DNA of 64,000 bases. Origin: Adineta vaga. Taxonomy: Eukaryota > Animalia > Rotifera. Shown here in pieces: positions 1-47,592 of this stretch. The notes below the pieces were generated by a model. It made no database searches. It was given only the letters and a program-made list of their open reading frames with translations, and had not been told where the DNA came from. The DNA is taken from positions 16,430,001-16,494,000 of the forward strand of contig CP075492.1 of assembly GCA_021613535.1 (NCBI GenBank). Direction: 5' to 3'. Positions within the stretch are counted from its first letter, which is position 1. Each line of letters opens with the position of its first letter. A program made the position numbers and the translations under genes.

Positions 1-2616
1 TTTAGTTTTGATATGTCAATATTTGAAATGTTTGGTACTTTATTAAATGGAGGAATATTAGTGATTGTTTCTCCAGAATCAACTTGTTCGATTCGAGCTC
101 TTATGGAATTACAACTTGATATTATTGGTCCTTCGACCGCTGTTTTTAATATTCTTGTACAACAAGAATCATCAGAAGCACTCTTTGCTTCTTTACAAAA
201 GATTTACATCGGTGGTGAAAAAGCCAATGTTAAATATTTACGTCGTGCAATGAAGGATCAAACTTTAGGAAAGTTTGTAAATATGTATGGTCCAACGGAA
301 ACAACGGTATTTGCCTTATTTTATGAATTATCAAACTCAATTCCGATAGATGCATCAACTATTCCTATTGGCCAATCATTAACAAATACATTGATTTATA
401 TTGTTGATGAATCATTAAATTTAGTACCACATGGTATTCCTGGAGAATTGTTAATTGGAGGAATTGGTTTAAGTAACGGTTATCATAATCGTTCTGATCT
501 TACAAAACAAAAATTCATCGATAATCCATTTGGCGAAGGTCTTGTTTATTGTACTGGTGATATTTGTCGTATGCTTAATGATGGTAATATTGAATTTCTT
601 CGACGTCTTGATACTCAAGTAAAACTTCGTTCACAACGTCTTGAATTAGGAGAAATAGAATTTCATCTTCTTCAACATGAATATATCGCCGATGCTGTTG
701 TTCTCTTACGTGACGATATAGTTGAAGACGAGAAACATCTTGTTGCTTATATTCAACCAATATCTTCAATCGATTCTGAACAAATACGTCACTATCTTAC
801 AAAGCGTCTTCCAGATTATATGATACCCACGTATATTGTCATCATGTCTCAATTTTCACTTAATCTTGTTGGTAAAATCGATAAAAAATCACTTCCAAAA
901 CCACAACGACAAATAAATACTTTAGACATAATTCGTCAAATATGTTCTCATGTATTAAAACAAAATGATATTGATATGAATGAGAATTTCTTTAAATTAG
1001 GAGGTCATTCTCTTTCAGCAATGGAAATAATTGCGAAAATTTATGAAAAACTTAACATTCAAATTACTATTCCTAATCTTTTTCAAACACAATCAATCGC
1101 TGAATTAGCTCGATATATAGAAAAACAATTGAAAACTGAAAATACTTCACAAAAATTAGAACATCCAAAAGTAAATAATCCTTCTCGTGCACCATTAACA
1201 GCTACTCAAAAACAATTTTGGTTTTTTTGGAAATTAAAACCAGAAAGTTCATTTTATAATGTACCAATAGCTTTCAAAATCAACGGAAAATTAAATATGG
1301 CAAAATTAAATCGTTCTTTACATTATCTTGTGTCAAAATATGTTTTATTACGAACTGAATTTAAAGAAGAAAATGATGGTACAGTTTGGCAAGAAAAAAA
1401 CCATCAGTGGAATTTACCTTTGATTGAAGAAACAATAGAAGGAACAATGCAAACACCAGAAGTTATTCAACGTTTACAATTTTATTCATTTAAACCATTC
1501 AAATTAACTGAAGGACAAGTTTGTCGATTTGTTGTCTTTCATTTGTCAAATAATCAGCATATTTTCTTGATTTGTTATCATCACATCATATGTGATGGAC
1601 AATCTGCTAGTCAATTTGTAAATGAATTATTCGAATTATATGATTCAAATGATACAATTTTACCAATGATTTCAAATAAAGACACATCATTTTTTAATTA
1701 TGCAATACATATGGCAGAAAATTCATCTTCAAAACATAATTTAGATCAAGTTATTAATTATTTACGAGATTTTCAATCATTAACGTTCAATCCACATTTT
1801 ATTAATGAACAAAAACAAGATATCGACTATAAATCACATATATCAACATTTGTTATTCCGACTAATATTGCTGAAAAATTAAGAAAATTAGCAATAAATC
1901 ATTCATGTACTTTGCATACTATTTTATTGGCACTATTTAATTGTATATTAAGTGTATATTGTTCGGATACATCGGATATTATACTTGGTTCAATTATATC
2001 TACACGTTCACAACCAGGTGTTATCAATTTATTTGGTCCTTTAATTAATACACTACCAATACGTACTCATCTTCCAAATACATCGAATACAACATTTCTT
2101 GATATTCTTCAAAGTGTACGTCAATCAGTTTTATTCAGTATGGAACATCAAATGGTACCTTTTGCTGATATTGTACAACGTTTACGTTCAATAAGTACAG
2201 ATCCAAGTCTGTTTACGTATCATCCTATTGTCCGAGTTATTTTTGAAATGAATTCATACAATTTATTTGATCGTTCAAAACAATTTATGGATGGAACTGA
2301 ATGGACTAGCATCAATGATTCACAATTACTTTTACCTTATACGAAATCTGATATTAACTTAGAAGTTATGGATTATGGTATTAATCAACCAATTCGTGTG
2401 GCTTTTTATCTAGACTGTAATTTATTCAAATCTGAAATAGCAACTGTCATGGCGGACTGTTATCGTTATGCAATTGATTTAGTCGTACGTGATTCAACAT
2501 GTACCAGAACAAAACTTTGGGATTATTTACATATGATTCAACAGAATAGATTTGATTTGATTTTACATGAACAATTCCGAAAACAAGTTTGGATTACATC
2601 ACATCTCCAGCTGTAA
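1..2616 (+). CDS. NRPS-PKS hybrid, upstream part (partial A domain - PCP - condensation domain); runs in from before the window
   Basis: Frame is open from base 1 (FSFDMSIFE = A4 motif). Motifs: NMYGPTETT, YCTGD, GKIDKK, PCP FFKLGGHSL (~1000), C-domain HHIICDG (~1580). Ends in LHEQFRKQV, the start of the next A domain. Confidence 0.95.
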   Translation, partial: FSFDMSIFEMFGTLLNGGILVIVSPESTCSIRALMELQLDIIGPSTAVFNILVQQESSEALFASLQKIYIGGEKANVKYLRRAMKDQTLGKFVNMYGPTETTVFALFYELSNSIPIDASTIPIGQSLTNTLIYIVDESLNLVPHGIPGELLIGGIGLSNGYHNRSDLTKQKFIDNPFGEGLVYCTGDICRMLNDGNIEFLRRLDTQVKLRSQRLELGEIEFHLLQHEYIADAVVLLRDDIVEDEKHLVAYIQPISSIDSEQIRHYLTKRLPDYMIPTYIVIMSQFSLNLVGKIDKKSLPKPQRQINTLDIIRQICSHVLKQNDIDMNENFFKLGGHSLSAMEIIAKIYEKLNIQITIPNLFQTQSIAELARYIEKQLKTENTSQKLEHPKVNNPSRAPLTATQKQFWFFWKLKPESSFYNVPIAFKINGKLNMAKLNRSLHYLVSKYVLLRTEFKEENDGTVWQEKNHQWNLPLIEETIEGTMQTPEVIQRLQFYSFKPFKLTEGQVCRFVVFHLSNNQHIFLICYHHIICDGQSASQFVNELFELYDSNDTILPMISNKDTSFFNYAIHMAENSSSKHNLDQVINYLRDFQSLTFNPHFINEQKQDIDYKSHISTFVIPTNIAEKLRKLAINHSCTLHTILLALFNCILSVYCSDTSDIILGSIISTRSQPGVINLFGPLINTLPIRTHLPNTSNTTFLDILQSVRQSVLFSMEHQMVPFADIVQRLRSISTDPSLFTYHPIVRVIFEMNSYNLFDRSKQFMDGTEWTSINDSQLLLPYTKSDINLEVMDYGINQPIRVAFYLDCNLFKSEIATVMADCYRYAIDLVVRDSTCTRTKLWDYLHMIQQNRFDLILHEQFRKQVWITSHLQL

Positions 2617-5600
2617 TATATCAAGGCCAGACATATACATATGTTGAATTGTTAGAACAAGTTGAACGTATAGCATCATATTTATGTCATATGAATACAA
2701 AACCAGGCGATATAATTGCTTTATATATGAATCGTTGTGCTTTTATGATCTCAGCTATGTTTGGAGTACTTATGGCTGGTGCTACCTATCTATATTTAGA
2801 TCCTGAACTTCCTGACCAACGCATACGTAGTATGCTTCGTAATGTTAATGTACGAATAGTTATAGAAAACGAAGAAGGATCAACAACGAATTGTTCAGCA
2901 TTTGAAAACATGAAAATATTGTCGAATAAATTGGTAGCGGAAGAATTGAAAGAAGACATTCAATTTCCAATCATTCATCCATCACATCATTGCTATCTTA
3001 TATATACATCTGGTTCTACAGGTGAACCCAAAGGTATGATGATTCAACATCAAGCTGTATCGAAACGTATTCGTCTACCTGTACCTATCACATCGTCGGC
3101 ACGAATAGCTCAATTAACATCATGCAGTTTTGATGCATACATTCTTGAAATATATGGTGCTTTACTTCATGGTGCTACATTAATTATCTATGATAAGAAA
3201 CTTATCTTTCAACCCAAACTACTTTTTGATCAAATTACAGAACAACATATCACCCATATGTACTTAGCAACACCTATATTTAATTTACTAGCTGAATATG
3301 TTCCAAATATTTTTGCTAATATGGAATGTGTCTTATTTGCTGGAGATAGTGCTAATGCTAAATTAATGCGTATAGTACTACAAACAAATAAACCACCAAA
3401 AAGATTGATCAACGCTTATGGGCCTACAGAAACAACTTGTATTGTAACATGGTATGATACTTCGATACATTTTCCAAATCTTTCCGATGATAGTCAAATA
3501 CCTATTGGTTTACCTTTATCGGATACACCTCTGTATATTGTTAATCCAACAACACTTGAATTAGTAGGAAAGAATGAAGAAGGAGAACTGATTATTGGTG
3601 GATATGGAGTTTGTGATGGTTATATTAATAATCATCATGAAACAAAAACAAAATTTCTTGTTAATCAATATGGTATGGATGGTAGAATTTATCGTACTGG
3701 TGATCGTGTTAAACGTTCTTCTGATGGAACTATTCAATTTCTTGGTCGTTTCGATACACAAGTTAAGATCAATGGAAATCGAATTGAATTAGCAGAAATT
3801 GAATATCTATTGCAAGGATATCCGACAATATCTGAAGCTATTGTTGTTGTTCGAAATGATCTTGTACCAAATACACAATCAATCGTGGCTTACGTTCGAC
3901 CTAAAGAACAAAATGAAAAAGAAATTCTTCAATATTTAAGCCGTCGATTACCTTCCTATATGTTACCATCATTTATCATACCAATTGAAGAATTTCCTAT
4001 TAGTTCTGGAGGCGGTAAACGAGATATCAAAAGTTTACCATCAATAAAAGCTAATATTAAAAACGAAAAGGATACTCTTTCAATAATAGAATCAAAACTT
4101 CAATTGGCGTGGAATACTGTTTTGAATAATGGTAAGAATAATCATGTATTTCAAATGGATGATGATTTTTTCATGTTTGGTGGAACATCAATGAATATCA
4201 TTCAACTTCATCGACAACTTGAAATACAATTTGGCTTAACATTAGATCCAATGTCCTTCTTTGAAATACGTACTTTATCTGCACAACTATCTTGGTTTGC
4301 TTCTCTTCAACCAAAGCATGTTGAACGTATACAAGAAAATCCACTGTCAAACAACATAACAACAGAAGGAATTTCTATTATTGGTATGTCTGCTCGATAT
4401 GGTACAATAGAAACAGCTGCTGATCTATGGACAGCACTTCGTAATGGTACCGATTTTTGTACTCATATTACTAATGAGGAATTATTACAACAAAATCCAT
4501 CGATGGCTAGTATGTTAAATGCTAATCCTAATTATGTTCATGCGCATTGTCCTATGACCAATGCTTTATGCTTTGATCATGTCTTTTTTGGTATGACTAA
4601 ACGAGATGCTGAAATTACTGATCCACAACATCGTATTCTGTTAGAAGCTACTTATGAAGCTCTGGAAAATGCTGGTATTGTACCACAAGAATATTCGGGA
4701 ACAATCGGTATGTTTGGAGCAATTTATCGAAATACATATGCTGATCAATATAATCTTTTACGTGCAAATCCTTACGAAGTTTATGATACAACGAAAGCAA
4801 GTATGGGTATTGCTACATTTGATTCAGCAACAATAATGCGTGCAGAAATTGGTAATATGATCGATGGTGCACCAACATTTGTTTCCTATAAATTAGGTTT
4901 TAATGGACCATCAATGGCAATACAAACAGCATGTTCATCTTCGGGAACTGCAATCCATATGGCAATACGTAGTCTCGAAGCAGGTGACTGTAGCATCGCT
5001 ATTGTGGCTGGAATTTCGATTACATTTCCATTAGATATGGGTTATAATTATCAACCAGGAATGGTTATGTCAAAGACGGGTATATGTCGATCGTTCGATG
5101 AAAGTGCTGATGGTGTTGTTGGTGGGGATGGAGCTGGTGTCGTAGTACTGATGAAAACATCAGAAGCTATATCAACTGGTTATTCTATTCGTGGTAAAAT
5201 TACAGGATATGCAATAAATAATGATGGTCAAAATAAAAAATCTTATTCTACAACTAGTCCAGATGCACAAGCCATGTGTATGCAAAAAGCACAGATGACA
5301 GCAAATATTCATTCTCCACAACAGGAAATTGATTATGTTGAAGCACATGGTCCTGGTACACAAATGGGAGATCTATTAGAGATTCAAGCACTTACCAAAG
5401 CATACTCTTCTCAAAATGAATCAATAACACGTCAACTATATTTAGGTTCAATTAAAACAAACATTGGTCATACAGCACATTCAGCATGCATGGCTGGTTT
5501 GATTAAAATAGTTCTATCTTTAGAAGCTGCTGAAATACCACCAACACTTAATTTTCATCAGTTTAGTCCCGTTGTTCAACGCTTACAACCGCCATTTCAA

Positions 5601-8600
5601 GTGAATACTCATACAATTCCATGGCCAACGAATGATAATAAGCATCGACCTCGACGTGCAGCATTAAATACTTTGGGACAAGGTGGAACAAACACACACT
5701 TTATTATCGAACAAGGTTATTCAATGCCAGAAGTTCATGCGTCGTTTGAACCACAACTCTTTGTTTTGAGCGCAAAAACAGAGACTGCTTTAACAAATGT
5801 CAAATTGCGTCTATTCAATCATTTATCGAAATCAGATGATGTACATTTACTTAATGCTTCTTATACTTTAGCATGCGGTCGCATAGCTTATGATCGACGA
5901 TACTTTGCTGTTGCCTCCACAGTTGAAGAGCTTAAAGAACAATTATCAAATACTAATATGTCGCTTGACAACAATAATAGTGAGAAAACGAAGCCTCAAA
6001 TTATTTTCGTCTTTCCTGGACAGGGTACACAATATGCTGGCATGGCTCGTCAATTATACGATCGTTTTCCACAATCATGTGCGAAAATAATAGATACTTG
6101 TTTAGACGAATTACATGCATTAGATAATGATATACAACAAAAAGTTCGTACATGTCTGTTCAATGAATTTTTTAATGATCATGTTGTACTTGAACAATAT
6201 GCTCAAATTACTTTATTCATTGTGGAATATAGTTTAGCTCAAGTTTTTCTCTCGTTAAATATTCGTCCACATTATATTATTGGACATAGTAGTGGTGAAT
6301 TTGTTGCTGCTTGTCTAGCCGAAGTGATGACAATGAAAGATGCTATACGATTACTTGTACGACGATGTCAACTTATGATGACTGTAGCATCTGGTGCTAT
6401 GCTTGCTGTAGAAATTGATCCCAAAGATGATATGTCTGAATTAGCAATAGAGTATGACGTCGATTTAGCTGTTATTAATTCATCGACTCAATATGTTTAT
6501 TCTGGTTCAGTATCGAATATACAAAAGCTCGAGACTGATATGCGAAACAAAGGAAAGAAAGTGAAATTACTCAATACTTTTACTGGATTTCATTCTCGTC
6601 TAATGGAACCAATCTGTCAACAATTAGAATATGAATTCAAGACTATGACATTACGAGAACCAACAATTCCTATTATTTCAACAGTAACTGGTCAACTTGT
6701 CAATGCAGGTGAAATGACACAAACGAAATATTGGTGTGATCATTTACGACAACCGGTACTCTTTGCTCCATGTCTTTTTTATATGTTAACCAACAATCTA
6801 ATGACAAATAATAGATCAACTATATTTATTCCTGTTGGACCTGGTAAAGCATTACATTCGCTTTTAATTCGTGCTGTATCAATGGCAACTGTTATTTCTT
6901 CTCCACTATCACCGAATTCATCATCCGCATTATTTTATACATTAGGCTCAATATGGGCAAATATGATTCCACTAAATTGGACAGAATATTATCGTAATAC
7001 AAATGCTCGACGTACAGTTTTACCAAACTATCCATTTGAACGAACAATATGTGACGCTGATAATCGAGCGACAACTATTACTGATACTAGTATTGAATCA
7101 TCAATTCAAACAAGATCATGCTGTACTGCTCATAATTTACCTGCAAATTTGTCAACAAAAAAAACAACAACAAAAGATTTATTTGAATTACTAAGCAAAC
7201 AAAATAAATTTCTCTGTGAACGAACTCAATCACATCAGAATCGAAAGAATACACTTCCATGGAAGATTAATAAACGTCCATCAATAAGTGTTCAACTATT
7301 GAATTTATTAACGAATACTTCTACATCATTACAGACAACACCTACAATTAGAGAAAATATGCAATTAAATCTTGGTTCTTGTAGTTCTCTATTCGTATTG
7401 GCTTTATATCATGAAGCGATCGAATTAGATCTACTTCAAAGTCATGATTTAGTAACACAATTTATTCCTAACGAATATCAACAATCTAATCTTACTCTAA
7501 CAATTGACGATCTTCTACAAAATAACATAGAAACAAATATGAAATGTTGCGCACCGGATGATTTACTCAATGCACTTCAACAAATAACAATGAAATCAAA
7601 AACTAAAACCGATCGTACTCCAACTATTTTTGCACTCTCATTATTAGGACATATATTAGCTGTTTTACATGAAACATCCTACGATGAACTCGTCTATGAT
7701 CGTATTATTCTACCATTCAATTTACAACAAACAAAGATCAATATTTCTCTATCCAATGAAGCTTACTATCCAGCTACAGCTACACAAAGTTGTATCGAGG
7801 ATCTACAAATGATTTTCAATTCATCTAACAATGATTCAATATCGACAGGATTTAAAAAGGCACTTCTATCAAATCAAGTGTATTACACAAATACTGAACA
7901 ACTTATTATACTAAATTATCCCAATAATTCTGACAAAGTGTTTATTATAGCTAGTCAACATCCACTCCAACAATCAAATGTTGATGCAATTATAAAATCT
8001 AGACATTCTTCCATTGATAAAAATGTCTGTCAATCTTTTACTAATTACGAAGAGCTTGTACATAAATGTTTAACACAGCTTCTTGGATCATCAGGTCATA
8101 CAATGATATCAAATTTCTCTTCTGGAACACTATTTGATCAATTAGGTATTGATTCTTTACAAGCTATTACATTTGTTGAACTTTTATCACAACAATTCGG
8201 TATTCAATTATCTGTCGATCTAATGTCAAAATATCCTAATATTAAAAGTTTATCTGATTATTTAAAACAATTTTTTTCTATAGATAATAACGATAAAGTA
8301 AAGCAATCTTTTCAAGAATATATTCTGAATAAGGAAGCTGGTATGCCACGTGTATATGAATCTACAACAACCAATCGTTCATTATCAATACTTTTATCAT
8401 TTATTACAAATAATAAAGTGAAATTACTTAAACAATTACATCAAGATGGTGCTTTACTATTCCGAGGATTTGCTGTTGATAGTGCTGAAGACTTTTCTAA
8501 AGTCGTCGAATTATTAGCTGATAAAGATAAGGCATTTCTCGATTATAAAGATGGTATTTCTCCACGTACTCGAATCACAAACAAAGTGTTCACTTCAACT

Positions 8601-9287
8601 GAGTATCCACAACAATTTGATATGGCTTTACACAATGAAATGTCGTATTCACATACAATGCCTTCAATGATTTTCTTCTATTGTCAGCTACCACCGGATG
8701 AAAGTGCAGGTGGTGAAACACCGATTGGAAATTCTGCAGCGATTTATAATGCAATTGATCCAAGCATTCGACAGGATTTTATTGATAAACAATTACTTTA
8801 TATTACTAATTTACCAAGTAAAACAAATGGAATTAGTCTTGGTAAAACATGGCAAGATACATATCAAACTGAATCAAAGGCAGATGTTGAAACGTTTCTA
8901 AAAGATAGAGATATTCAATTCAAATGGTTAGCCGATGATCGTCTTAGAACAATACGACTGATTGATGGTGTTCGACAACATCCAGATACAGGTGAAATGG
9001 TATGGTGTAATCATGCTCATTTGTTTCATCCAACAGATCTTAATATATCGACACGTCAAACTCTACAGAAACGTCTTGAACCATTAGATATGCCAAAAAA
9101 TTGTTTTTTTGGTAATGGAGATATTATTCCAGATACATCACTTGATCATATTCGTCAAGTATTGAAACAGCATGAAATAAAATGGACATGGAAAACAGGC
9201 GATATACTTATATTAGATAATCTTCGTACAGCACATGGTCGTGCTTCATTTCATGGAGAACGACGTATTTTAGTTTCAATGTGTTAA
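2589..9287 (+). CDS. NRPS-PKS hybrid, downstream part: A - PCP - KS - AT - degenerate beta-lactamase-like domain - ACP - TauD/SyrP-like Fe(II)/2OG dioxygenase
   Basis: A: YTSGSTGEPKG, NAYGPTETT, YRTGD. PCP: FGGTS. KS: DPQHR, TACSSS, EAHGPGT, KTNIGH. AT: FPGQGTQ, GHSSG, GFHS. ACP: LGIDSL. Dioxygenase: LHNEMSY, GGETP, DNLRTAHGR. Intronless; continues the previous ORF across a -1 frameshift. Confidence 0.95.
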   Translation: MDYITSPAVIYQGQTYTYVELLEQVERIASYLCHMNTKPGDIIALYMNRCAFMISAMFGVLMAGATYLYLDPELPDQRIRSMLRNVNVRIVIENEEGSTTNCSAFENMKILSNKLVAEELKEDIQFPIIHPSHHCYLIYTSGSTGEPKGMMIQHQAVSKRIRLPVPITSSARIAQLTSCSFDAYILEIYGALLHGATLIIYDKKLIFQPKLLFDQITEQHITHMYLATPIFNLLAEYVPNIFANMECVLFAGDSANAKLMRIVLQTNKPPKRLINAYGPTETTCIVTWYDTSIHFPNLSDDSQIPIGLPLSDTPLYIVNPTTLELVGKNEEGELIIGGYGVCDGYINNHHETKTKFLVNQYGMDGRIYRTGDRVKRSSDGTIQFLGRFDTQVKINGNRIELAEIEYLLQGYPTISEAIVVVRNDLVPNTQSIVAYVRPKEQNEKEILQYLSRRLPSYMLPSFIIPIEEFPISSGGGKRDIKSLPSIKANIKNEKDTLSIIESKLQLAWNTVLNNGKNNHVFQMDDDFFMFGGTSMNIIQLHRQLEIQFGLTLDPMSFFEIRTLSAQLSWFASLQPKHVERIQENPLSNNITTEGISIIGMSARYGTIETAADLWTALRNGTDFCTHITNEELLQQNPSMASMLNANPNYVHAHCPMTNALCFDHVFFGMTKRDAEITDPQHRILLEATYEALENAGIVPQEYSGTIGMFGAIYRNTYADQYNLLRANPYEVYDTTKASMGIATFDSATIMRAEIGNMIDGAPTFVSYKLGFNGPSMAIQTACSSSGTAIHMAIRSLEAGDCSIAIVAGISITFPLDMGYNYQPGMVMSKTGICRSFDESADGVVGGDGAGVVVLMKTSEAISTGYSIRGKITGYAINNDGQNKKSYSTTSPDAQAMCMQKAQMTANIHSPQQEIDYVEAHGPGTQMGDLLEIQALTKAYSSQNESITRQLYLGSIKTNIGHTAHSACMAGLIKIVLSLEAAEIPPTLNFHQFSPVVQRLQPPFQVNTHTIPWPTNDNKHRPRRAALNTLGQGGTNTHFIIEQGYSMPEVHASFEPQLFVLSAKTETALTNVKLRLFNHLSKSDDVHLLNASYTLACGRIAYDRRYFAVASTVEELKEQLSNTNMSLDNNNSEKTKPQIIFVFPGQGTQYAGMARQLYDRFPQSCAKIIDTCLDELHALDNDIQQKVRTCLFNEFFNDHVVLEQYAQITLFIVEYSLAQVFLSLNIRPHYIIGHSSGEFVAACLAEVMTMKDAIRLLVRRCQLMMTVASGAMLAVEIDPKDDMSELAIEYDVDLAVINSSTQYVYSGSVSNIQKLETDMRNKGKKVKLLNTFTGFHSRLMEPICQQLEYEFKTMTLREPTIPIISTVTGQLVNAGEMTQTKYWCDHLRQPVLFAPCLFYMLTNNLMTNNRSTIFIPVGPGKALHSLLIRAVSMATVISSPLSPNSSSALFYTLGSIWANMIPLNWTEYYRNTNARRTVLPNYPFERTICDADNRATTITDTSIESSIQTRSCCTAHNLPANLSTKKTTTKDLFELLSKQNKFLCERTQSHQNRKNTLPWKINKRPSISVQLLNLLTNTSTSLQTTPTIRENMQLNLGSCSSLFVLALYHEAIELDLLQSHDLVTQFIPNEYQQSNLTLTIDDLLQNNIETNMKCCAPDDLLNALQQITMKSKTKTDRTPTIFALSLLGHILAVLHETSYDELVYDRIILPFNLQQTKINISLSNEAYYPATATQSCIEDLQMIFNSSNNDSISTGFKKALLSNQVYYTNTEQLIILNYPNNSDKVFIIASQHPLQQSNVDAIIKSRHSSIDKNVCQSFTNYEELVHKCLTQLLGSSGHTMISNFSSGTLFDQLGIDSLQAITFVELLSQQFGIQLSVDLMSKYPNIKSLSDYLKQFFSIDNNDKVKQSFQEYILNKEAGMPRVYESTTTNRSLSILLSFITNNKVKLLKQLHQDGALLFRGFAVDSAEDFSKVVELLADKDKAFLDYKDGISPRTRITNKVFTSTEYPQQFDMALHNEMSYSHTMPSMIFFYCQLPPDESAGGETPIGNSAAIYNAIDPSIRQDFIDKQLLYITNLPSKTNGISLGKTWQDTYQTESKADVETFLKDRDIQFKWLADDRLRTIRLIDGVRQHPDTGEMVWCNHAHLFHPTDLNISTRQTLQKRLEPLDMPKNCFFGNGDIIPDTSLDHIRQVLKQHEIKWTWKTGDILILDNLRTAHGRASFHGERRILVSMC

Positions 9288-9373
9288 TATTTCATTTTCA
9301 TTATTAGATTTGATTCATCCATTCATACATGTTGTATGTTAATTTTGTATATAGTGAATTGTTTGTGTTTCTA

Positions 9374-9379
9374 AATAAA
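9374..9379 (+). terminator. Putative polyadenylation signal of the NRPS-PKS gene
   Basis: AATAAA ~90 nt after the stop codon, with GT-rich sequence nearby; the hexamer is common in AT-rich DNA. Confidence 0.4.
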
Positions 9380-9866
9380 ACTTCAAAATAAGTTTTTGTC
9401 GTAGTTATTAAAGGTTATCTTGAAGGTGTAGATGTAGATCATTTACTATACACACACCCCATCAAGATACTGATTCGAGAATCACTCTGAGCTTGTTAAT
9501 ATTTAGATTCTTATCGTATGAATAGGGATTTATACACTCGTAAAATCGAAGAGTTTGTAACTAATATTTACTTAGTATGAACACAATTCAAGTCCGTTAG
9601 ACTATTAATCATATTGATCAAAAGCATCAAATTTCTTTCGAGTTCATGATTTTTATTAGTAAACATAAATTGTTAATCAAATTATATATTTTCTCATACT
9701 GTTGTACGTGTCATTTCTCATTATTTATCTATGAATCTTTTTATCAAATAAAAAGTACAGAATAACATCCATACAATACATTTCATAAAAATGACTCGTA
9801 TTCTCTTCTGATAAAGATAAACGATTCAGTGACGTCATTTATGATTTTATAAATCAGAACCTTGAA

Positions 9867-12800
9867 ATGAAGATTTGGACATTGTTTTGTTTTATGTTCG
9901 TCAAACAAATTTTAGGTAATTTGCGATTTGATTTTCACGCGACTTATTGATTAGTTTTCATTTCAGCATTGCCATTCAATCAACCGAAATTTTGTTCGAA
10001 TTCAACTTGGAATAAGAATGGCATTACGTTTGCAAATCAAACCATTGTTGGAGAATATCCTCGTGCTATCTTTATCAATACAAATAATACAATTCATATT
10101 TCTCATCGACAAAATTATGAAATTTTAATTTGGTTTAATGAAAGTGAAAAACCTGCAAAAATTATTTCAGGAAATATATCAGATCCATATTCAATATTTA
10201 TCACAAATCTTGGTGATATTTTTCTTAATAATGGTGATGTCAATTTTCGAGTTGAACGCTGGATTATGAAGGATAACATTTTTGTCAATGTAATGAATAT
10301 CGAGTCATATTGTTATGGTTTGTTTGTCGATCAAAATAATACTTTATATTGTTCAATTCGAAATCGTCATAAAGTAGTGAAGAAATGGTTAAATGATGTT
10401 GAATTAACATCAACAATTATTGCTGGAAATAATATTGCAGGTTTTGCTTCAAATCAATTATCTTCTCCTTATGGAATATTTGTTGATGATAATTTTGATT
10501 TATATGTAGCAGATTTTGGAAATGATCGTATTCAACAATTTCAATTTGGACAATTAAATGGAAAAACAATAATAGGAAATGGATCTATTCATTATACTAT
10601 TGCACTTACTCGGCCAACTTGGATTGTTTTAGATATTGATAAATATCTTTTTATTGTCGATCATGGAAATAATCGTATAATTGGTTCAAATCAAAATGGT
10701 TTTCGATGTTTAGTTGGATGTGATGGAGAAGGTTCACAATCTCATCAATTATTAGATTCATATAGTTTTAGTTTTGATTCTCATGGAAATATGTTTGTTA
10801 GTGATCAACGTAATCATCGAATTCAAAAGTTTCTTTTTGAAAAAGAATCTTGTTGTAAATTAAAATAAAATCAAGAATATTCAATTGCTATTGTATTTTT
10901 TTTAATCTTTTTAGATTCAACAAATGCTCTTTTAACACGTGGTACAACGGATCATCAAGGTTTGTTCTCTATGAATATCATTAATGAATAAAACTTGATA
11001 TCATTTTTCTAGATAAAACAACTCTTTTACCGGAAACAACACAAAATCTACAAAGTAAATTGAATGAGATTACGAGAAAGGATCCGTAACATAGTACTTT
11101 TTTTTATATCGTCAGAATACCTCAGTAGAAGAATTAAAAGCATACAGAATTGATTTAGAACGATTTTTCTCATCATACTTTCACTCTGACTGTTTTCATT
11201 CCAGAAAATAGTATAGCTTTCATGGATAAGACTTAATTCCTTTGTTCTATAACTATTGAGGCAATTTTTCGTAAAAAATAATCTATGAATCTTTTTACGT
11301 TTATGCAAATTTTTCAAATATCTCAGTAAATAGATAAATTTCAATGAATAAAAAATTATTTCATTTCAGACGTTAATTTTAATCAACCAAAATTTTGTCC
11401 AAATGCAACTTGGAATAAATCTGGAATTACTTTTGCAAATCAAACCATTGTTGGAAGGAATCCTCTCGCCCTTTTTATCAATACAAATAATACAATTTAT
11501 GTTGTTAATAAAGATAAAAATGAAATTTTAATATGGTTTAATCAAAATTCAAATCCAACAAAAAATATTATAGGAAATTTTTCATTTCCACGATCCATCT
11601 TTGTGACAAAACTTGGAGATATTTTTATTGATAATGGTGATAAGTATCGTCGAGTTAACCAATGGATTTCAAAGAATAATACTTTTATTGATGCAATGAA
11701 TGTTGATTCGATATGTTTTGGTTTGTTTGTTGATCGAAATAATACTTTATATTGTTCAATGAGAGATAAGAATAAAATAGTGAAAAAGCAATTAAATGAT
11801 CAAACAATAACACCAATAGTTGTCGCTGGAAATGGTACTAATGGATCTGCTCCAAATCAACTTCATAGTCCTTATGAAATTATTGTTGATGATAATTTTG
11901 ATTTATATGTAGCAGACTGTGGAAATCATCGCATTCAACTATTTGAATATGGAAAATCCGATGGAATAACAAAAGCAGGAAAAGGCTCTGCTACATTTAC
12001 ACTTACACTTCTCTGGCCAGCTGGAATATTTTTAGATGGAAATAAGTATCTCTTTATTGTAGATCGTGATTATCATCGTATAATTGGATCAGATGAAAAT
12101 GGTTATCGATGTTTAGTTGGATGTGATGGAGAGGGTTCACAATCTTATCAATTATCATGGCCACGGACTCTTAGTTTCGATGTTGATGGAAATATGTTGG
12201 TTAGTGATTATAACAATCATCGAATTCAAAAGTTTCTTTTTGAAAAAGAATCATGTGGTAAGTCAAAATTTAATTAAAGGAAAAAGATAAATGAATTAAA
12301 ATATTTCGTTTTTATTATTTTTATAGATAAAACAACATTGATTCGAACAACAAATCAAATTGAACAAAGTTCGTTAAATTTAAGGAAATAATTTGTAAAT
12401 TCATTTGTAATTTTTTTAGATGAAATAACAACAATTGAAAGTACATTACAAAGTCAACAAGGTTCGTATTGAAATAATTTTCTTTAGAGATAAATTTTAT
12501 GTTTTAAAAATGAAAGATAAAACAACTGTATTTTCAAAAACGGAACAAATCTTAACAACTTCTCTTAAGAATGAAGGTAAAAATTTCATTAAATTATTGG
12601 AAATACAAAAATATTTTTAATCCATGACAGGATTTTTCGTAAATCGACCACACTTTTGTTCGAATGCAACTTGGAATAAAAATGCAATTACATTTGCTAA
12701 TCAAAGCCTTATTGGAATAAATCTTGTTGCTTTTTTTGTCGATACAAATAACATCATTTATGTTGCTAATAATGAAAAAAAAGAACTTTTAATTTGGTTG

Positions 12801-15800
12801 AATCAAAGTTCAAATCCAATAAAAATTAACTTAGAAAATGTTTCAAGTCCATATTCCATCTTTGCAATAGAACACGGTGATATTATTATTGGTAATAGTG
12901 ATCAGTATCATCCAGTTCTTAAATGGATTTCAAAAACGAATACTTTTGTCAATATAATGAATGTTGATTCACAATGTCGAAATCTATTTGTTGATCAAAA
13001 TAATTTCTTATATTGTTCAATGAGATACATTCATAAAGTAGTGAAAAAATGGTTAAATGATCTTAAAATGAATACAACAATTGTTGCTGGAAATGGTACT
13101 CAAGGTTCTGCATCGAATCAACTTGATACTCCATACGGAATCTTTATTGATGTGAATTATGATTTATATGTTGCAGATTCAAAAAATAATCGTATTCAAC
13201 TATTTCAATTTGGACAATCAAATGGAATAACAATAGCCGGAGATACTTCTATTAATATTACAATTACACTTTATCAACCAATAGGAATTATTTTAGATTT
13301 AAGAGGATATCTTTTTATTGCGGATAATGGACGTGGACGTATAATTGGATCAGATCAATATGGTTTTCGATGTTTGGTTGGATGTAATGGAAAAGGTTCA
13401 CAATCTCATCAATTATCCAATCCAAATAATCTTTATTTTGATCGTGATGGAAATATATTTGTTAGTGATTTCAGCGATCATCGAATTCAAAAATTTCTTT
13501 TTGTAAAAGATTCATGTTGTAAGTATTTTTATTTCAAATATTTTTTTTCTCATTTCATTTCTCTTTTTGTTTCTAATAAAATAGATTCTTCGTTAAAAGA
13601 ATGTCAAATTCCACTAATTCGTTTAATTCCTCACTCAACTTATTCATCGCCAATTCAAATACGTCGAAATCGTGATTTTTATATTTTATCAATCATTAAA
13701 TTAAATTGTTCAAAATCTTTTCAAATTAAATCTCAATGGTTTATTCGAAATGGTACAAATCAATTAGATTTTCCTTCAATTAAAACGCATTTCAATGAAC
13801 TATACATTCCATCAACAATACTTCCATATGGAATTTATCAATTTACTCTTCATATTCAAATGATTGATTATCCAACTATTCAAGCATCAGAATCCGTTTA
13901 TATTCAAGTTAATCCAACAGGTATTACGGCAAATCTTGTTCCATTAGGAACATCAATGATTACGTCAGGTCATCAACAAAATCTTCATTTAAATCCAGGA
14001 AATTATTCCAATGATCCTGATGGTTATCCATTTAATTCAACAGTCAGTTTCTTCTTCTCCAAATATTTCGTTTTATTCAATTCTCTCTCTTCCTTCTATT
14101 AGGATTGGATTTATCAATATTACTGTCGAATCTATGATATTCATAATGAATTTCTAACAGATTTATCATGTCTATCAAAATATGAATATGATGGAATGAA
14201 ATATCCAAAAGAATCTTCGATCACAATTTTTGCTGAATCATTACAACTCGGAGAAACTTATCAATTTATGGTTCAAATGAATAACCGAAGAAATTTAACA
14301 ATTTATGCAACAGGTTATGTTCTTGTTCAAATTAAAGATTTACAAAAACCAATGATTATCATCGGGTAAATTCAATAAAAAAATCTTTCAATATTATTCT
14401 TATCTTTATATTTTAGATGTGTTATTTCCACACTTTGTTCATCAAATCTTGAATATCAATTTATAAATCCGACCACACAGGTTGCTTTATATTCATATTG
14501 TTATAGAAACTGTCCTTCAAATGAAATAATTCAATGGAACATTTATTATCGATCATCAAATTCAACCGAATGGATTTTATTTCCCGAGATGAATTCTTCT
14601 TCATGGTTTTATGGTAAGATTATCATTATTTTGAAAATAAGACTTATTTTTTCATTTGAAAGGACAAAATACAAAGAATTTCACGGCTACAAATGATTTA
14701 TTTTTAAATTATCCTCAAGAAATTTATTGGCGATTTGAAGTGATTTATTTATTTGAGAATGAAACAAGTATCAGTGCATTAAATTTTCAAATTAAACCAA
14801 AACCTTCCAATGGAACTTGTTCAATTGATCCAATAAATGGAACAATTGAAACACTTTTTCAAATTAATTGTATTGATTGGCAAATTAAAGATGATATTAT
14901 AGATTATTCATTATATTGGTTAAATGATTCAACAAAACGAATAATCATTGCATTTTCACCTGTAGCGAATTTTACCGTTCGATTACCAAGTGGAAATCTT
15001 AATCTTGTCGTTCAAATTCGTGATTTGATGAATTCAATTACTGAATTTAATATTTCAACATCTATTTTCGTTGCATCAAAACCTATAAACAATTTACAAA
15101 CTGAATTATTTCAAAGTAAAGATCAAAATTCTATTGGACAAATTATTAGTTCAATTTCACAAGAATTAAATCAAATTTCTAATGAAAATCTTCAGAAAGC
15201 AATGCGAAGTAACGTCCTAAACTTCTTTCTTCAATAAAATCTTCTCGTTGTTTTTTATTTAGATGGAATTCAACCGACACAAATTTCTATTTCAACATTA
15301 GGACAAAATCGAACTTCTTTTATCAAGAATTTTATTTCAAATCAATCTGCATTGAATGAATTCAATAAACAACTTAATTTTCAAGGAAAATTTCGAGAGA
15401 TTTTAAGTGAATTTACAATGAATCTTCCTGTAATGACAATTGATAGTATCAAATTACAATTATCAACACTAATTCAACTTAGTGAATCAACAAATGAATT
15501 AACAAGAAAAACTCTTGAAATTATTTCAAATAAATGTTATCAATTAGCAAAAGATCTTCATTCATTTTCAACGAAAATTCCCTATGAAGATATTCAAATC
15601 ACAGGTCAACAACTTCTTCAATGTGCTGCAAATGTTTTGACCGTAATTAACAAAATAAACTTTCCATTCATTAATCTTCTTTATGAATATCATAGGTGTT
15701 AAATGGAGTGTTTTACAAGAACGAACAAATGTTTTAAAATCAGATTTTGATAGTTCAACAAAACACCTGATGATTATGATACTAATTTAGATTCTGATTG

Positions 15801-16817
15801 GTCAAATTTAAGTATGAAATCATTTCATCTTTCTTTCTATAATAAAATCTTTCTCTTTTAGAATTATTTATTAATAAAAATCGTAATCGATTTTATCAAG
15901 AAAAATTAGCAAATGAAATCATGAGTAAAGCGAATCAGATCGTATCATTAGTTACTTCGTCGTTAAATGTTCACTTAAATATCGGACAAAAGATGATCAT
16001 CAATACATTACAAATATTTGTTTCATTCGAAACAATTTCAGTCGAATCACTTTTTAAAAAAGCAATAAAACAAGTTGGAGGAGCTGAAATTTATCTTTCA
16101 TCAAATCTAACATCATCATTTAACAAGAATTCAATCGTTTCTCTTCGAACAATGATGGAACGATTAGCTGTTTATGATAAAAACTCAAATACAAATCTTT
16201 CTACAATGATTTCCGTAACAATTCTTGATCAGAATGGAAATGAAATTCCATTTGTAACAACAAAACAAAATCCAATTCGACTAATAATTCCACGAGATTC
16301 AAATTTTATTATTCCACCAATGAACTATCATAATGTTTCATTATTAAATTCAACTTCACATAATCAAACATTTCATTATCATTTTGTTAATATAACATCT
16401 TATTTACCAATTTCAATACATATTGAATTTGAACCATTGAATTTCAATTTATCTTACTTAATGGTTTATAAATTTGATCAATTTCCACAGTTGAATAGTT
16501 CAATTAATCAAATGGATGGATGGAAATTATTTCATTCATCGAAAGAGAAGAAAACCCATCTTCTTTTTCTTGATAATCAACAAACAATTGGTCATCAAAC
16601 ATTAATCTTTGGTTTACGAGAAATAAATTCATCAAACAACAATACTCTTCCAATTCCAACTGAACCTGTTCATTTCACATCAGATTACCGATTGAGAATT
16701 TATACATCAGGTTGTTATTATCTTAATGAACAAAATCAATGGAAATCTGATGGATTAATAGTTGGATCAAATACAAATCATTATGAAACAGAATGTTTTT
16801 CAACACATTTAGGGTGA
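9867..16817 (+). CDS. Polycystin-1-like ectodomain gene: signal peptide, three NHL beta-propellers, REJ region, GAIN/GPS (multi-exon; possibly pseudogenised)
   Basis: Signal exon 9867-9915 (MKIWTLFCFMFVKQIL) splices in frame to 9967. NHL units at ~9967-10854, ~11370-12258 and ~12631-13518 (LYVADxxNxRIQ). REJ exons from ~13584 (P.NGTCSI.P..G). GPS motif CYYLNEQNQWKSDG...TECFSTHL. The exon at 15696-15811 appears to carry two frameshifts. Confidence 0.8.
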
Positions 16818-18650: not shown

Positions 18651-18702
18651 AAAAAAGAATACCTATTTTACAAGAAATATTTTCTTTCATTGAATGCATA
18701 CC

Positions 18703-18778
18703 TGAAGGTGTGGGTGTGTATGAGGGTGGATATATCATAATGCTTGACTCAAACCCACACCCACACCCACACCCTCAA
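18703..18778. repeat. Telomere-hexamer palindrome
   Basis: TGAAGGTGTGGGTGTG...ACCCACACCCACACCCACACCCTCAA. Confidence 0.8.
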
Positions 18779-21438: not shown

Positions 21439-21595
21439 GATATATTCAATCTTTACAGTATTATAATATTCCATATCAAAACCTCTGTTTTTACTTCACC
21501 GTAATCATGTGATCGAAAACAAAAAAAAAAGAAAGTGGGACATATATGTCCTATCGCCCATTAAAAAGTTATTATCTTGAAATCAACTGTGGTCT

Positions 21596-24728: not shown

Positions 24729-24973
24729 CTAAATTATTTTGTAACTCATTTCCGTCATGAACTCCTTTTATCAAAAAAACCTGGCTCATATGAACTGTAT
24801 AGTGTAAAAATTCTAATTGTTTTTATGATCTAATTATTTATGAGACACCGTGTAGAAGGTAGTATTCTTCCGTCCGAAGACGAAAGATGATGAATTATGG
24901 GCAATCAGCGAGCGTTCTCTTCTTCTTTAGATATTCAAACTATTTTAATATATTCGCTAGTGCTATCACCAAA

Positions 24974-27506
24974 ATGGTAAGCATTCTTCTCAGTTCAGAT
25001 GACAAAAAAATCAAGTATGGTGACCTGCCTAAGACACTTATCAAACTCCTTTACGGTGTTCACGATTTGGATGTTGCACTTGTACGATTCGACGCAATTT
25101 ATTCTGACAAAGTGAGCGGAATGGATGACATGCTGTCCGAGTTCGATGGTCACATCGGTGATTGTGGTTGTCAACTACGAGCTCAGATGCTTTGGAGTAT
25201 TACAGAACACTACCGCGAATCGAAAAGTCGTGAATGGATCGGCAATGTCGTTCAAACACTTCAACATATCAAAAATAAAATTATTGCCATGTACTGTGAT
25301 ATTCGTCGAGTAAAGAGTGATAATCAATTCTTGGGTTTCCCTTCATCAATTCCACTCATTGATATTTTGACCGTATTGAGTGCAAATCTCTGTTCGCAAT
25401 ACTTGACGATTATTCATCTAAAACTGATTCAGATGACGAGTTTGTTGTCTCTACAGCTTCCAATCATAATATCACCTGTCATTCAAACAATATAGGTGAG
25501 AAATCATCTGGCATTCGCCTGAATAAACGGGAGCGTCGTCGAACAGCCAAAGCCGATAAATGGAACTTGTCCGATTATCGTATGGTAGCTCGGTTTCTAT
25601 CCTACTGTCGGATTTTATCACTTAACAAAAAGGCTGTTCTTGAGCCTGGTGCCACTCGCATTCGTAGTCGACTTGATCCTCTGTTTGCTGCTGCTGTAAC
25701 CAAGAAACAACTTGATGATCTGAATCTCATCCATGATGGCCCCTTATCAAACTTTCTCACGCGCGACGATCAGCCCACTCGTACAGGGCTCGTCCGTGAG
25801 ATCGAAAATATGCAAGTATATGTTTCACAACTTACTTGTGATTGGTTAACCAAATTGTCTCTCGAGATGGGTCTCGCACAACCCATTCAAAAGTAATCTA
25901 TTCATTCCCCTCTGACATTTTATATTCATCTGTTTATTTAACAGGCTTCTCAAAAGCAGTGTTCGAATTTCATCGCGTCTACTTCATTGCATTTCGGCAT
26001 ACGCATCTATTCTCGTCATACGCATTGAGTGGCTAGTCAAACACACTCCACTTTTCCTTGTAGTTCGTCGTTTCTGCACTCATGGTACGTAGTTCAGTTT
26101 TATTCTTACATAATCTCTAGTTTTCATGCACGCTTTCATATGACTCGTAATTCCCTGAGATTGAAACTGCATTCCTTAGTAAAATCGCTAACATTACCTA
26201 TTGTTATCCTTCATCAATACTTTTTGTAACTTTATGATATATACCGTTTCACTCGATGGACTAATGCTAATACGTTTTTCCTTCGTTCATTTGCAAGTTT
26301 GTACTTGTATACAATTTCTCGAATTATTTATATGTACAGATTTAGTACGTAACTTACATTAACAGTAATTGTTTCACACAATTAATCTTCCTTGTGAGGC
26401 AGTCTTCAATTTTTAACGTCAGATATTTCAGTATCGTTCAACACTTCTTTCGCATACCTTTTTCTAAATCGCATGTAGTGGAAGTATTTTTATCGTAGAA
26501 AAGTGACAATATGATCCTTTGATTATCAGTGCTCCTTTATCACAGTTTGAAACGCTACTGACATAACCTAACTATTTTATTTTATTTCGTCGCATGATAT
26601 TGTCTAGTATGTTCAAAGATTTATTTTAACGATCGTTCATGAAAAATAACAAGTCATGATCGGTTTCGACCTTGCTTAAGAGTCTCAAGCAAGACTGAAA
26701 CCGGTCAAAGCTACTTATTCTTATTTCGAGTGTATTCTGTTTTGAAATGAATCGTATACTGTTATATATTATCTATTTGATATCAAATAATCTGACATGT
26801 ATATTGTTCTTGTCTTTTACTAGGCTACCATAACATATTCTATCGCGTCTCGATTAATTCCGATGCAGTTCATTCCAAAATTAAAGCTATTCGTCAAGAC
26901 AACTCTAAGATTGTTGAATTTGGTAGTGCCGATTGGTTTAATCTTACCTTAGTTCATCTGGACTCAATTCTTAATCAAGATTGGAGCTATCAACCTCACG
27001 TGATTCTCATATCGAATTCTATCAATGGTAACATGGATGATTTTTACATTCGGATGGGTAACACCAGTCATTTCGGACCTCATACTAGTTCATGTTCTGA
27101 GTTCGAGGACTTTGTCACGAATGAATTCGCCAAAATTAATTTTTCACAGGCTATCATGCATTTCTTTGGCGCTCACGACCAATATCCATTCGAGCTACCC
27201 GGCAATGAGTCTGAGTTTGATGTAATCGAGAAAATTGTTGATTCGACTCTTGGTCGCGAGGCAGCCACAATCTACCGTCGGACAGTGGACGAAGCTCAAT
27301 GTTATAGAGGACAATATACTGCTCTCGGTCTCTTGAATTTTCAACACATCTTTACAGAGCTACCCGTCGTCGTTGTTCGCCAGACGGAATATATAACATT
27401 GAAAAATGAAAGGCCATCTCTGTACGGTTATCGATGGACTGACATTGCAGCTACAATGTTACACCAGACTGCAGTGCGAAGTGAATTGTATCAACTGAAA
27501 ACATGA
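24974..27506 (+). CDS. Uncharacterised multi-exon protein (about 500-550 aa)
   Basis: Open coding segments at ~24974-25372, ~25433-25892, 25946-26084 and 26824-27506. The last three join in frame through GT-AG introns; the first junction is not exactly resolved. Motif-like segments GHIGDCGCQLRA, HFFGAHDQYPF and FQHIFTE. Confidence 0.7.
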
Positions 27507-29404: not shown

Positions 29405-29578
29405 CTTGCAGCGATTTCGGCGATAGCACCTTTCAGCGATGCTTTTTTCGGCGATAACATCTTGCAGCGATGTTTTTTCCGCGATATCACCTTTCAGCGA
29501 TGCTTTTTTCGGCGATAACATCTTTCAGCGATGTTTTTTCCGCGATATCACCTTTCAGCGATGTTATTTTCGGCGATG
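29405..29578. repeat. Minisatellite with ~15/30 bp period (TTTCAGCGATGTTTTTTCGGCGATAACACC-like)
   Basis: About 12 GCGAT-anchored units in tandem; related runs at ~44925-44985 (reverse) and ~45912-45998. Confidence 0.85.
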
Positions 29579-31134: not shown

Positions 31135-31280
31135 GTAGGGTGGGTGGGTGTGACAAAGAACTGAATCGTTTCCTCGTAGATAAAGTTGCTAGATAAATTC
31201 ATCTCATTTTTGGCACAGGCAGAAAATACTTGTCTTCCACAGTCGAGGGTAAAGTGAGTCGGCACGACCAGCTTTACATG
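31135..31280 (-). repeat. ~150 bp element, copy 2, upstream of the second P450
   Basis: AGGGTGGGTGGGTGTG...ATAAAGTTGCTAGA...AAAATAC...CAGTCGAGGGTAAAGTGAGTCGG. Confidence 0.85.
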
Positions 31281-45909: not shown

Positions 45910-46226
45910 AAAGTTCGGCAATGTCTATTTCGACGAAATATATGTCGAATATTTCTATTTCGACGATATCACCTTTCGGCGATGTTTTTTTCGGCGATGA
46001 GTGTGACAACCTGTTTTATTTCCAACATGAGTAAGCAAAAAATAAATGTCTATTATAATACATCTAACGATATTCACACGTGGAAATGTTTTTTGATAAG
46101 CTTATCAAGACTTGCTATATATAGGATAACTTCTTTTTGCATCAAATTATTATTCTTTTTTTTTCTCTACACAGATAGCATTAACTTTACATCGAATCTA
46201 GATATCTATCTACAAAGTAGAGAAAT

Positions 46227-46571
46227 ATGGCATCATCAGACGAACACAAAAAAGCTGTTGAAGGTTTCATTGCTGCATTATCTGCTCACAATATTGATGA
46301 ATACGTTTCGTATTATGATCCCAAATGTGAAGTAACACTTAATGGACAAGTTGTCATTCGATCAAGAGATGAATTAAAAAAACAGATGGAACAAAGAATG
46401 TCGGATCCCGATTATAAAGTTCATATTGTTGAATTTTTACCAATTGAAGGCGATGATTGTGTACGTTTTATTGTGGGAGATACAGACAAAAATCGAAAGG
46501 ATGAAACTTGTGTCTTTTCAAAAGAAGGAAAGATTGTCCAACAAATGATCACTATTCTAGACAAACAATAG
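46227..46571 (+). CDS. SnoaL-like / NTF2-fold small protein
   Basis: 114 aa, intronless; AVEGFIAALSAHNIDEYVSYYDPKC...SRDELKK and a C-terminal FSKEGKI match the NTF2-like pattern. Confidence 0.75.
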   Translation: MASSDEHKKAVEGFIAALSAHNIDEYVSYYDPKCEVTLNGQVVIRSRDELKKQMEQRMSDPDYKVHIVEFLPIEGDDCVRFIVGDTDKNRKDETCVFSKEGKIVQQMITILDKQ

Positions 46572-46909: not shown

Positions 46910-47592
46910 CTACAAATGTTTTGTTTTTTCATTGATAATCTTTTCACTCAATTCCCATAATTCTTGTGCTTCTTTCGAGTTATAAGCTGTAGAACTTGGT
47001 TGAGCTACTCTACAATCAGAATGATCTTTTCCAGGTTGAGCTTCATCTGATAAAGCACAATATAATGTTGTCATTGCTCCTTGACCTATAGACTATTCTT
47101 AAAAGCGGCCGTATAATTGATATTGTATACGATTTTTTGTCACGATTTAATCCTGTTGTTCCAATTGTACCAGGATGAAGTGAATAAGCTTTAATACCTT
47201 GATCACCATATCGTCTTTGTAATTCATTTGTATATAGAATATTCGCTAATTTTGATTCAATATAAGCTTGGAAAGGATTATATGAATTATTCTGAATAAA
47301 ATTAGTATTTTCTTTAGCAAAAACATGTCCAAGACTGCTTACATTAACAATACGTCCATTCGTTTTGATCAATAATGGTACAAGAAGTTGAGTTAAATAA
47401 AAATGACCAACTATAAATAAAACATAAGAATAGAAATATATCCGTAAACGATGTAACTTACTATGATTTGTTCCAAAAGTACTTTCTAAACCATCTTTAG
47501 TAAATTCTTTTTGTTCTTTTACAACACCAGCATTATTAATTAAAATATCTACTTTATCAATTTTTTCAGCAAACACTTTTACACTTGCTAAA
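46910..47592 (-). pseudogene. Short-chain dehydrogenase (RDH12/WWOX-like), 5'-truncated and frameshifted
   Basis: DILINNAG, FGTNH/GHF split by an intron, RIVNVSS, YIESK, SLHPG; GQGAMTTLYCAL...LWELSEK lies in another frame. No TGxxxGIG segment found upstream. Confidence 0.8.

Follow-up and report, generated by a model that had tools for sequence, protein, structure and literature searches.

Bdelloid rotifers are the best-known animals that use horizontally acquired biosynthetic genes against pathogens, and attention has so far centred on their megasynthases, built from nonribosomal peptide synthetase (NRPS) and polyketide synthase (PKS) modules. The yeast PUL cluster combines PUL1, a cyclodileucine-forming enzyme, with the cytochrome P450 (P450) PUL2, the transporter PUL3 and the regulator PUL4. 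Clusters that depend on a cyclodipeptide synthase (CDPS) include yvmC-cypX (pulcherrimin) and Rv2275-CYP121 (mycocyclosin), and the gliotoxin cluster comprises GliP, the P450s GliC/GliF, the methyltransferases GliM/GliN and the transporter GliA. The window analysed here is a 64,000-nucleotide stretch of the bdelloid Adineta vaga (Chrom_3:16430001-16494000 of the Av20 assembly, CP075492.1; 100.8 Mb in six contigs). It begins inside an NRPS-PKS megasynthase and continues into a series of tailoring-type and transporter genes, which a first-pass annotation had read as one pathway around that megasynthase. The span probably holds two biosynthetic gene groups rather than one. Unit A consists of the NRPS-PKS and an ABCB gene upstream of it (ABCB-up), while unit B, at 20.5-46.6 kb, consists of a methyltransferase, two P450s (P450-1 and P450-2), a PUL1-like gene and a second ABCB gene, with a SnoaL-like gene that may also belong. 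That the two units are independent, with a native NHL/REJ gene between them, is about an even bet, and a probability of roughly 0.5 is given to unit B as a cyclodipeptide-type cluster in its own right, built on a core enzyme of its own.

Compared with the yeast PUL cluster, unit B shows both parallels and departures. Its candidate scaffold gene, which is not a CDPS, likewise adjoins a eukaryote-type P450 and a transporter, and a fungal (Psilocybe) member of the same family bears the PUL1 name and adjoins two P450s. Unlike in yeast, the transporter is an ABCB pump and not a PUL3-type importer, and neither a PUL4-like regulator nor any Pfam transcription-factor domain appears among the scanned open reading frames (ORFs). 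Unit B also adds a methyltransferase and a second P450, so its product would carry more decorations than pulcherriminic acid does. The layout of classic CDPS clusters recurs in a second set of bdelloid loci, termed type II here, where a CDPS lies directly beside a P450 and a methyltransferase and a transporter are present as well. In contrast, the window has no CDPS, nor does a six-frame search with a bdelloid CDPS profile find one within 30 kb upstream or 20 kb downstream, and the unit B P450s are microsomal and eukaryote-type, not of the bacterial CYP121/CYP134 type. Gliotoxin-type clusters place the same enzyme classes around a peptide core, but the megasynthase of the window has three A domains and a PKS module with a TauD end instead of a two-module diketopiperazine NRPS, and no glutathione-handling or thiol-oxidase genes were seen.

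Animal CDPSs are known from cnidarians (Nematostella Nvec-CDPS2) and marine worms (PMC5816076). No paper joining bdelloids and cyclodipeptides was found in the literature searched. Nowell 2024 (Nat Commun 15:5787, PMC11258130) places region3.7 here by antiSMASH borders only, and the methyltransferase, the two P450s, the PUL1-like gene and the second ABCB are not named there as a unit. Unit B is apparently undescribed. Throughout, Pfam scans were run on single ORFs, and searches used single exons or intact orthologous ORFs; broken genes were handled as separate pieces with their frames unrepaired. Every gene class listed by the first-pass annotation was recovered at about the place it had given.

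The candidate core of unit B is the gene that had been described as an unknown protein. A phmmer search with an intact orthologous ORF against 1.84 billion representatives returns 47 relatives, and those with names are all bdelloid or fungal (five Agaricomycetes, Calcarisporiella and Geranomyces). A Psilocybe cubensis relative, KAH9478538.1, is labelled 'putative cyclodipeptide synthase PUL1' and matches the Rotaria-labelled orthologue at E 1.3e-19. The more downstream ORF matches the last 200 residues, at the C-terminus, of these fungal proteins, and both ORFs are therefore read as one two-domain gene. In P. cubensis (L031, CM039005.1:1545075-1566868), the PUL1-labelled homologue directly follows two P450 genes of 545 and 522 aa, and this locus may represent an uncharacterised basidiomycete cluster of like kind; the Dendrothele homologue is not beside P450s. 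The gene is single copy in A. vaga. The PUL1-like protein is the candidate scaffold-forming enzyme of unit B.

A tailoring oxidase stands directly beside this candidate scaffold gene, since P450-1 is transcribed divergently from it at a distance of 1.7 kb. P450-1 is single copy, very divergent and without a close paralogue in A. vaga. P450-2 belongs to a dispersed family with at least 10 paralogues in an own-genome search, and the two P450s share only about 23% identity (A. ricciae P450-1 orthologue against P450-2 exon 3). The A. vaga genome yields at least 39 P450 matches at E<=1e-10 in 100.8 Mb, so about 0.01 would be expected per 26 kb. Two non-tandem P450s lie inside the 26-kb span of unit B, which puts their co-location beyond chance. 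Among the remaining members, the methyltransferase has prokaryotic small-molecule methyltransferases, Rv0560c among them, as its nearest solved structures. The unit B ABCB has enlarged introns and is colinear, exon by exon, with a homologue on a metagenome contig (L023), with stop-free main frames. It has no close A. vaga paralogue (<=55%), and its A. ricciae orthologue on locus L019 has 82-85% nucleotide identity. The SnoaL-like gene stands head-to-head with this ABCB in A. vaga as well as in A. ricciae and was seen only in Adineta.

Unit B linkage extends beyond one species. Contigs of relatives were reached through homologues of the methyltransferase exon. In A. ricciae (L019), P450-1, the methyltransferase, the SnoaL-like gene and the orthologous ABCB lie within 20 kb, rearranged and with a long interspersed nuclear element (LINE) inserted. 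Two further contigs, one from ENA (L022) and one labelled Rotaria sp. Silwood1 (L021; GCA_905332295.1, CAJOBT010003283.1), carry the methyltransferase, P450-1 and the PUL1-like gene in A. vaga order. The first-pass annotation had proposed synteny across bdelloids as a check on its model, and the outcome is divided: the unit B genes are linked in relatives, but the megasynthase is not linked to them in the DNA fetched. It was not found on the accessory-gene contigs over the parts retrieved, namely the 12-13 kb contigs in full, some 14-16 kb from the 16-19 kb contigs and only some 20 kb from the 142-kb A. ricciae contig (CAJNOJ010000261.1).

Two observations on the A. ricciae locus may be recorded separately. 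A LINE (RVT_1 / Exo_endo_phos) at L019:6304-9440 sits just upstream of the methyltransferase, where the A. vaga sequence is unbroken. Just upstream of P450-1, a 594-aa minus-strand gene runs off the locus at position 1, and its length and position fit a PUL1-like orthologue.

Type II clusters are built around a true CDPS. Sludge-metagenome contigs (L023-L025) hold a P450-2-type gene, a P450-1-type gene, a 283-aa CDPS, a methyltransferase and an ABCB within 11 kb. The 283-aa protein of L023 matches the solved CDPS deposited as FoCDPS at E 5e-12 and several other CDPSs at about 1e-4, and it matches Pfam CDPS (PF16715) below the cut-off; the bdelloid CDPS family (relatives P0129-P0138) is divergent. 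R. sordida (L029) has a CDPS, a P450-1-type gene, an ABCB and a P450-2-type gene, and a second A. ricciae locus (L030) has a CDPS between an ABCB and a P450-1-type gene. The clade II P450s of these loci lie 50-520 bp from the CDPS genes. A tree of P450-1-type proteins separates clade I (the window, L019, L022 and L021) from clade II (L023, L029 and L030), with 46-52% identity between them. Since A. ricciae holds both clades, these are two paralogous cluster types and not orthologues, and an initial candidacy of L023 as an orthologue of the window cluster was dropped on the strength of this tree. The SnoaL-like gene was not found in type II clusters, and a 104-aa ORF after the L023 methyltransferase, considered as a counterpart, proved not to be SnoaL-like.

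Own-genome searches of A. vaga gave no type II CDPS and no P450 of clade II. The only CDPS found there is canonical and of a different type (Chrom_6:13227318-13227833). It forms the second part of a 495-aa ORF (Chrom_6:13226598-13227833; L028:802-2286) that starts with the C-terminal half of a P450 (Pfam 114 bits) and continues into the canonical CDPS (76 bits). Within A. vaga, P450-1 has its nearest relative in this P450 half, and the next ORF belongs to the arginase family. The supplement of Nowell 2024 (PMC11258130) lists the fused ORF as region6.5, the only cyclodipeptide entry found there. It is possible, though doubtful on present evidence, that bdelloids keep two paralogous fungal-derived diketopiperazine cluster families that share the P450/methyltransferase/ABCB set around scaffold enzymes that are not homologous, one family using a divergent tRNA-dependent CDPS and the other a PUL1-like protein, with the window as the PUL1-like version.

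Transcript and selection data bear on the state of the unit B genes. Compared with orthologues, the Av20 sequence has a 1-nt deletion in P450-1 (~22481-22489) and another in the PUL1-like gene (25364/5). Read contigs of four runs were placed on 20300-26299, which covers the methyltransferase, P450-1 and part of the PUL1-like gene. An independent DNA contig (run X4) has both missing bases, and a 1538-nt transcript contig (run X9) covers the whole of P450-1 with the extra base included. The frame breaks therefore either come from the haplotype that was assembled or reflect errors of assembly, and the idea that the A. vaga cluster is decaying was rejected. Two runs contain spliced RNA contigs that skip the methyltransferase intron (20710-20762, GT..AG). 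For the PUL1-like gene there are two transcript contigs, both short and of low depth, which signify weak transcription. Transcript contigs of all three genes occur in run X9; such contigs give no expression levels. The ratio of nonsynonymous to synonymous substitution rates (dN/dS) is 0.11-0.46 for the methyltransferase, 0.16-0.40 for P450-1, 0.23-0.28 for the PUL1-like gene and 0.23 for the SnoaL-like gene, and these four genes are under purifying selection.

The same enzyme classes lend themselves to a different explanation, a detoxification or defence island in which the P450s act in phase I, the methyltransferase in phase II and the ABCB in phase III against microbial small molecules, with the PUL1-like gene as a passenger or in some other role. 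P450s, methyltransferases and ABCB pumps are standard for xenobiotic handling, the solved relatives of the methyltransferase include the heterocyclic-toxin methyltransferase Rv0560c, and P450-2 comes from a large dispersed family. Nowell 2024 (PMC11258130) likewise noted a possible role in resistance or export for P450 and ABCB1 genes on the flanks of a PKS-NRPS cluster. The explanation is nevertheless unlikely, because a CDPS or PUL1-like gene stands beside P450-1-type genes, or is fused to them, wherever a neighbour is seen, and pure detoxification needs neither. This holds at seven of the seven P450-1-type loci with neighbouring DNA in view, at a distance of <=2.5 kb or by fusion; the neighbour at L019 is unseen. 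P450-1, moreover, falls outside any expanded detoxification family.

The megasynthase of unit A has the Pfam domain order A-T-C-A-T-C-A-T-KS-AT-(weak beta-lactamase-like)-T-TauD, which describes a three-module NRPS with a one-module PKS and a TauD-type dioxygenase at the end, without a terminal thioesterase or reductase. Supplementary Data 9 of Nowell 2024 (PMC11258130) lists it as region3.7:16406273..16459287 (intact, 4290 aa, CAS_like), and three coding sequences of that region at 16426273-16439287 correspond to window -3727..9287, where negative coordinates lie upstream of window position 1. The A, T, C, KS and AT domains occur in one colinear gene at the published coordinates, which confirms its membership of region3.7. 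The same table lists region3.3:2706884..2759476 (1 frameshift, 4316 aa, CAS_like), so that both the megasynthase and its duplicate are already catalogued. The duplicate lies at Chrom_3:2720848-2739843 with 87-88% identity and spans window -9433..9301 only (blastn of the extended region against Chrom_3:2.70-2.80 Mb). It contains ABCB-up and the NRPS-PKS, and nothing past 9301 is copied; tblastx of the whole extended region against its paralogous counterpart gave, apart from the ABCB match, too much noise to be of use.

Orthologues of the TauD-ending megasynthase occur in Rotaria sp. Silwood2 (L026), in Didymodactylos carnosus (L027) and in one ENA metagenome. The first two are colinear with the window gene over their full length, and the Rotaria gene is a single 4394-aa ORF. 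In the Av20 sequence, two 1-nt deletions relative to the paralogue and to Rotaria (after -1110 and after 2605) break the window gene into three ORFs. Nothing in the orthologue flanks (Rotaria, 4.7 + 3 kb; Didymodactylos, 6.7 kb) resembles the surroundings of the window gene, a weak test given how short these flanks are. The NRPS-PKS core is thus not accompanied by the tailoring neighbours, either in the duplicate, which ends at 9301, or in the flanks of Rotaria and Didymodactylos, which are unrelated but short. Because the duplicate stops where it does and the orthologue flanks are unrelated, ABCB-up and the NRPS-PKS appear self-contained, and the sequence comparisons point to a two-gene unit of its own.

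As a side observation, an ENA contig that encodes protein P0011 (ERZ25069412) carries a 45%-identical NRPS-PKS orthologue, and about 1.5 kb on there are two plus-strand ORFs of 98 and 134 aa with the same spacing as the two methyltransferase exons; they have no Pfam match on record.

These results bear on the single pathway proposed at first, in which the NRPS-PKS product would pass to the methyltransferase and P450s for tailoring and leave the cell through one or both ABCB pumps, with foreign and native genes combined. One part of that proposal stands: the tailoring-type genes form a real, non-random group that recurs in related species and is partly transcribed. All of the genes lie within 50 kb in a region rich in biosynthetic genes, with a reducing PKS as a third core enzyme 6 kb past the window, and a megasynthase without a thioesterase or reductase end may need partners. 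In A. ricciae, moreover, ABCB1 and P450 genes flank another PKS-NRPS cluster and are co-induced with it (Nowell 2024, PMC11258130). The place of the NRPS-PKS as the core did not hold, and a single cluster is distinctly unlikely. The megasynthase duplicate took ABCB-up alone, and the flanks of the megasynthase orthologues in other genomes differ. Unit B turns up again in the retrieved DNA with no megasynthase beside it and has a candidate core of its own, and a large native gene and repeats lie between the units.

Neutral co-location, in which foreign genes pile up in certain regions and their arrangement is shared by descent without joint function, was the first-pass annotation's main alternative and is very improbable: the window-type arrangement does occur only in close relatives (synonymous divergence, dS, 0.3-0.6) and the region does have transposon-like repeats and rearrangements, but the same four or five families recur in different orders at three further loci of the paralogous cluster type, the measured genes are under purifying selection, and two unrelated P450s in 26 kb amount to about 100 times the genomic density.

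The preferred reading thus remains a unit B that is separate from unit A and cyclodipeptide-type. A modified cyclic dipeptide is the suggested product because type II clusters have the same accessory families grouped around a real CDPS and because of the fungal relative's name; from these we infer the chemistry of both the PUL1-like protein and the product. In the proposed pathway, the PUL1-like fungal-type protein would make a cyclic dipeptide (diketopiperazine) scaffold, which the divergently transcribed P450-1 would oxidise. P450-2 and the TPMT-like methyltransferase would decorate the scaffold further, and the ABCB pump would export the product, with the SnoaL-like protein possibly taking part.

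Several points weigh against this reading. With regard to the core enzyme, the link to PUL1 depends on a submitter's name for one Psilocybe protein and is a lead, not a result. Both domains lack a Pfam family, a PDB relative and a fold match: Foldseek and VIA-align on AlphaFold models (N-domain pLDDT 77, C-domain pLDDT 72) gave nothing above helical-bundle background, the ESM Atlas yielded no result for either the PUL1-like protein or the Psilocybe one, and HHalign found no relation between the PUL1-like and bdelloid CDPS families. Without a fold match in either domain, no catalytic mechanism can be read from the protein. Yeast PUL1 and PUL2, which suffice for pulcherriminic acid in S. cerevisiae and are non-homologous to bacterial yvmC/cypX, offer a precedent, yet the biochemical activity of yeast PUL1 is itself unconfirmed (PMC10786192; bioRxiv 10.1101/2025.03.18.643849). 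The accessory classes are, as noted, also classic for detoxification.

The comparative evidence has weak points of its own. The methyltransferase, P450-1 and PUL1-like genes of the Rotaria-labelled contig L021 are as near to A. vaga as those of A. ricciae (dS 0.34-0.60; tree distance ~0.25), while true Adineta-Rotaria pairs in the sister clade stand at ~0.7. This Adineta-like character points to contamination, mislabelling or recent bdelloid-to-bdelloid transfer. The window-type linkage is shown only for close relatives (dS 0.3-0.6), in which descent by itself would predict synteny. For unit A, the orthologue flanks reach only 3-7 kb, compared with the 11 kb that separates the units in A. vaga, and linkage elsewhere may exist.

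Should unit B work as a cyclodipeptide pathway, a second chemical class would join the bdelloid arsenal, one with the iron-chelating antifungal pulcherriminic acid among its relatives. Unit B would then also be an animal example of a fungal-type multi-gene cluster under purifying selection and, if the PUL1-like protein is its core, the first animal pathway of PUL type. One accessory set around either a CDPS or a PUL1-like protein would form a natural 'core swap' that could reveal the unconfirmed chemistry of the PUL1 family. In practical terms, the antiSMASH-style borders of region3.7 should not be taken as one pathway. The features of the region are listed in Table 1.

Table 1. Features in and next to the window, in window coordinates
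Feature	Position	Strand	Basis or remark
ABCB-up (unit A)	-9433..-4366		Head-to-head with megasynthase
NRPS-PKS megasynthase (core of unit A)	-3727..9287, in window 1..9287	+	Pfam; coordinates agree with Nowell Supplementary Data 9
NHL-repeat/REJ/GPS polycystin-like multi-exon gene	9969..16817	+	Pfam NHL, REJ; GPS weak
Leucine-rich repeat (LRR)/F-box-like fragment	18084-18738	-	
TPMT-like class I S-adenosylmethionine (SAM) methyltransferase, I4U23_016146, 218 aa	20474-20709 + 20763-21183	+	Pfam; protein P0001
P450-1, single exon	23160-21596	-	Pfam
126-nt inverted repeat, arms 75% complementary	23302-23427 + 31155-31280	.	Repeat search
PUL1-like two-domain gene	24887..27506; N-domain exons 24887-~26107, C-domain exon ~26800-27506	+	phmmer
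P450-2, three exons	31603-33353	+	Pfam
ABCB, full length (two transmembrane-nucleotide-binding domain, TMD-NBD, halves)	43474-34220	-	Pfam
SnoaL_2/DUF4440-like NTF2-fold gene	46227-46571	+	Pfam E 2.5e-5, at or just below cut-off
Short-chain dehydrogenase (SDR) ORF	47043..47855	-	Pfam adh_short

Other features of the region appear to be bystanders or structural elements. The NHL/REJ gene, which lies outside the segmental duplicate, is of native type and is probably a bystander that belongs to neither unit. The SDR is probably also a bystander outside unit B, and no counterpart was found beside the SnoaL-like gene in A. ricciae L019. Four single-base coding deletions were seen in the region, and Av20 may hold more, making intact genes look like pseudogenes. 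The reducing PKS past the window end (AT, DH, ER, KR and ACP domains; L010:6095-9921 + L011:81-2921, window ~70.1-79 kb, minus strand, ~6 kb away) is absent from the Chrom_3 regions retrieved from the Nowell table (region3.1-3.8).

The arms of the inverted repeat flank the PUL1-like gene on both sides. A very high-copy repeat of ~58 bp at 23221-23278 adjoins one arm; depth reaches 3722 in the 23100-23299 bin (DNA run X4), and many contigs stop at 23221/23278. The inverted repeat and the high-copy repeat could underlie the inversions between A. vaga and A. ricciae. A separate 61-nt unit occurs in three tandem copies at 29415-29597, and a fourth copy (70% identical) lies at 45958-46018, just upstream of the SnoaL-like gene.

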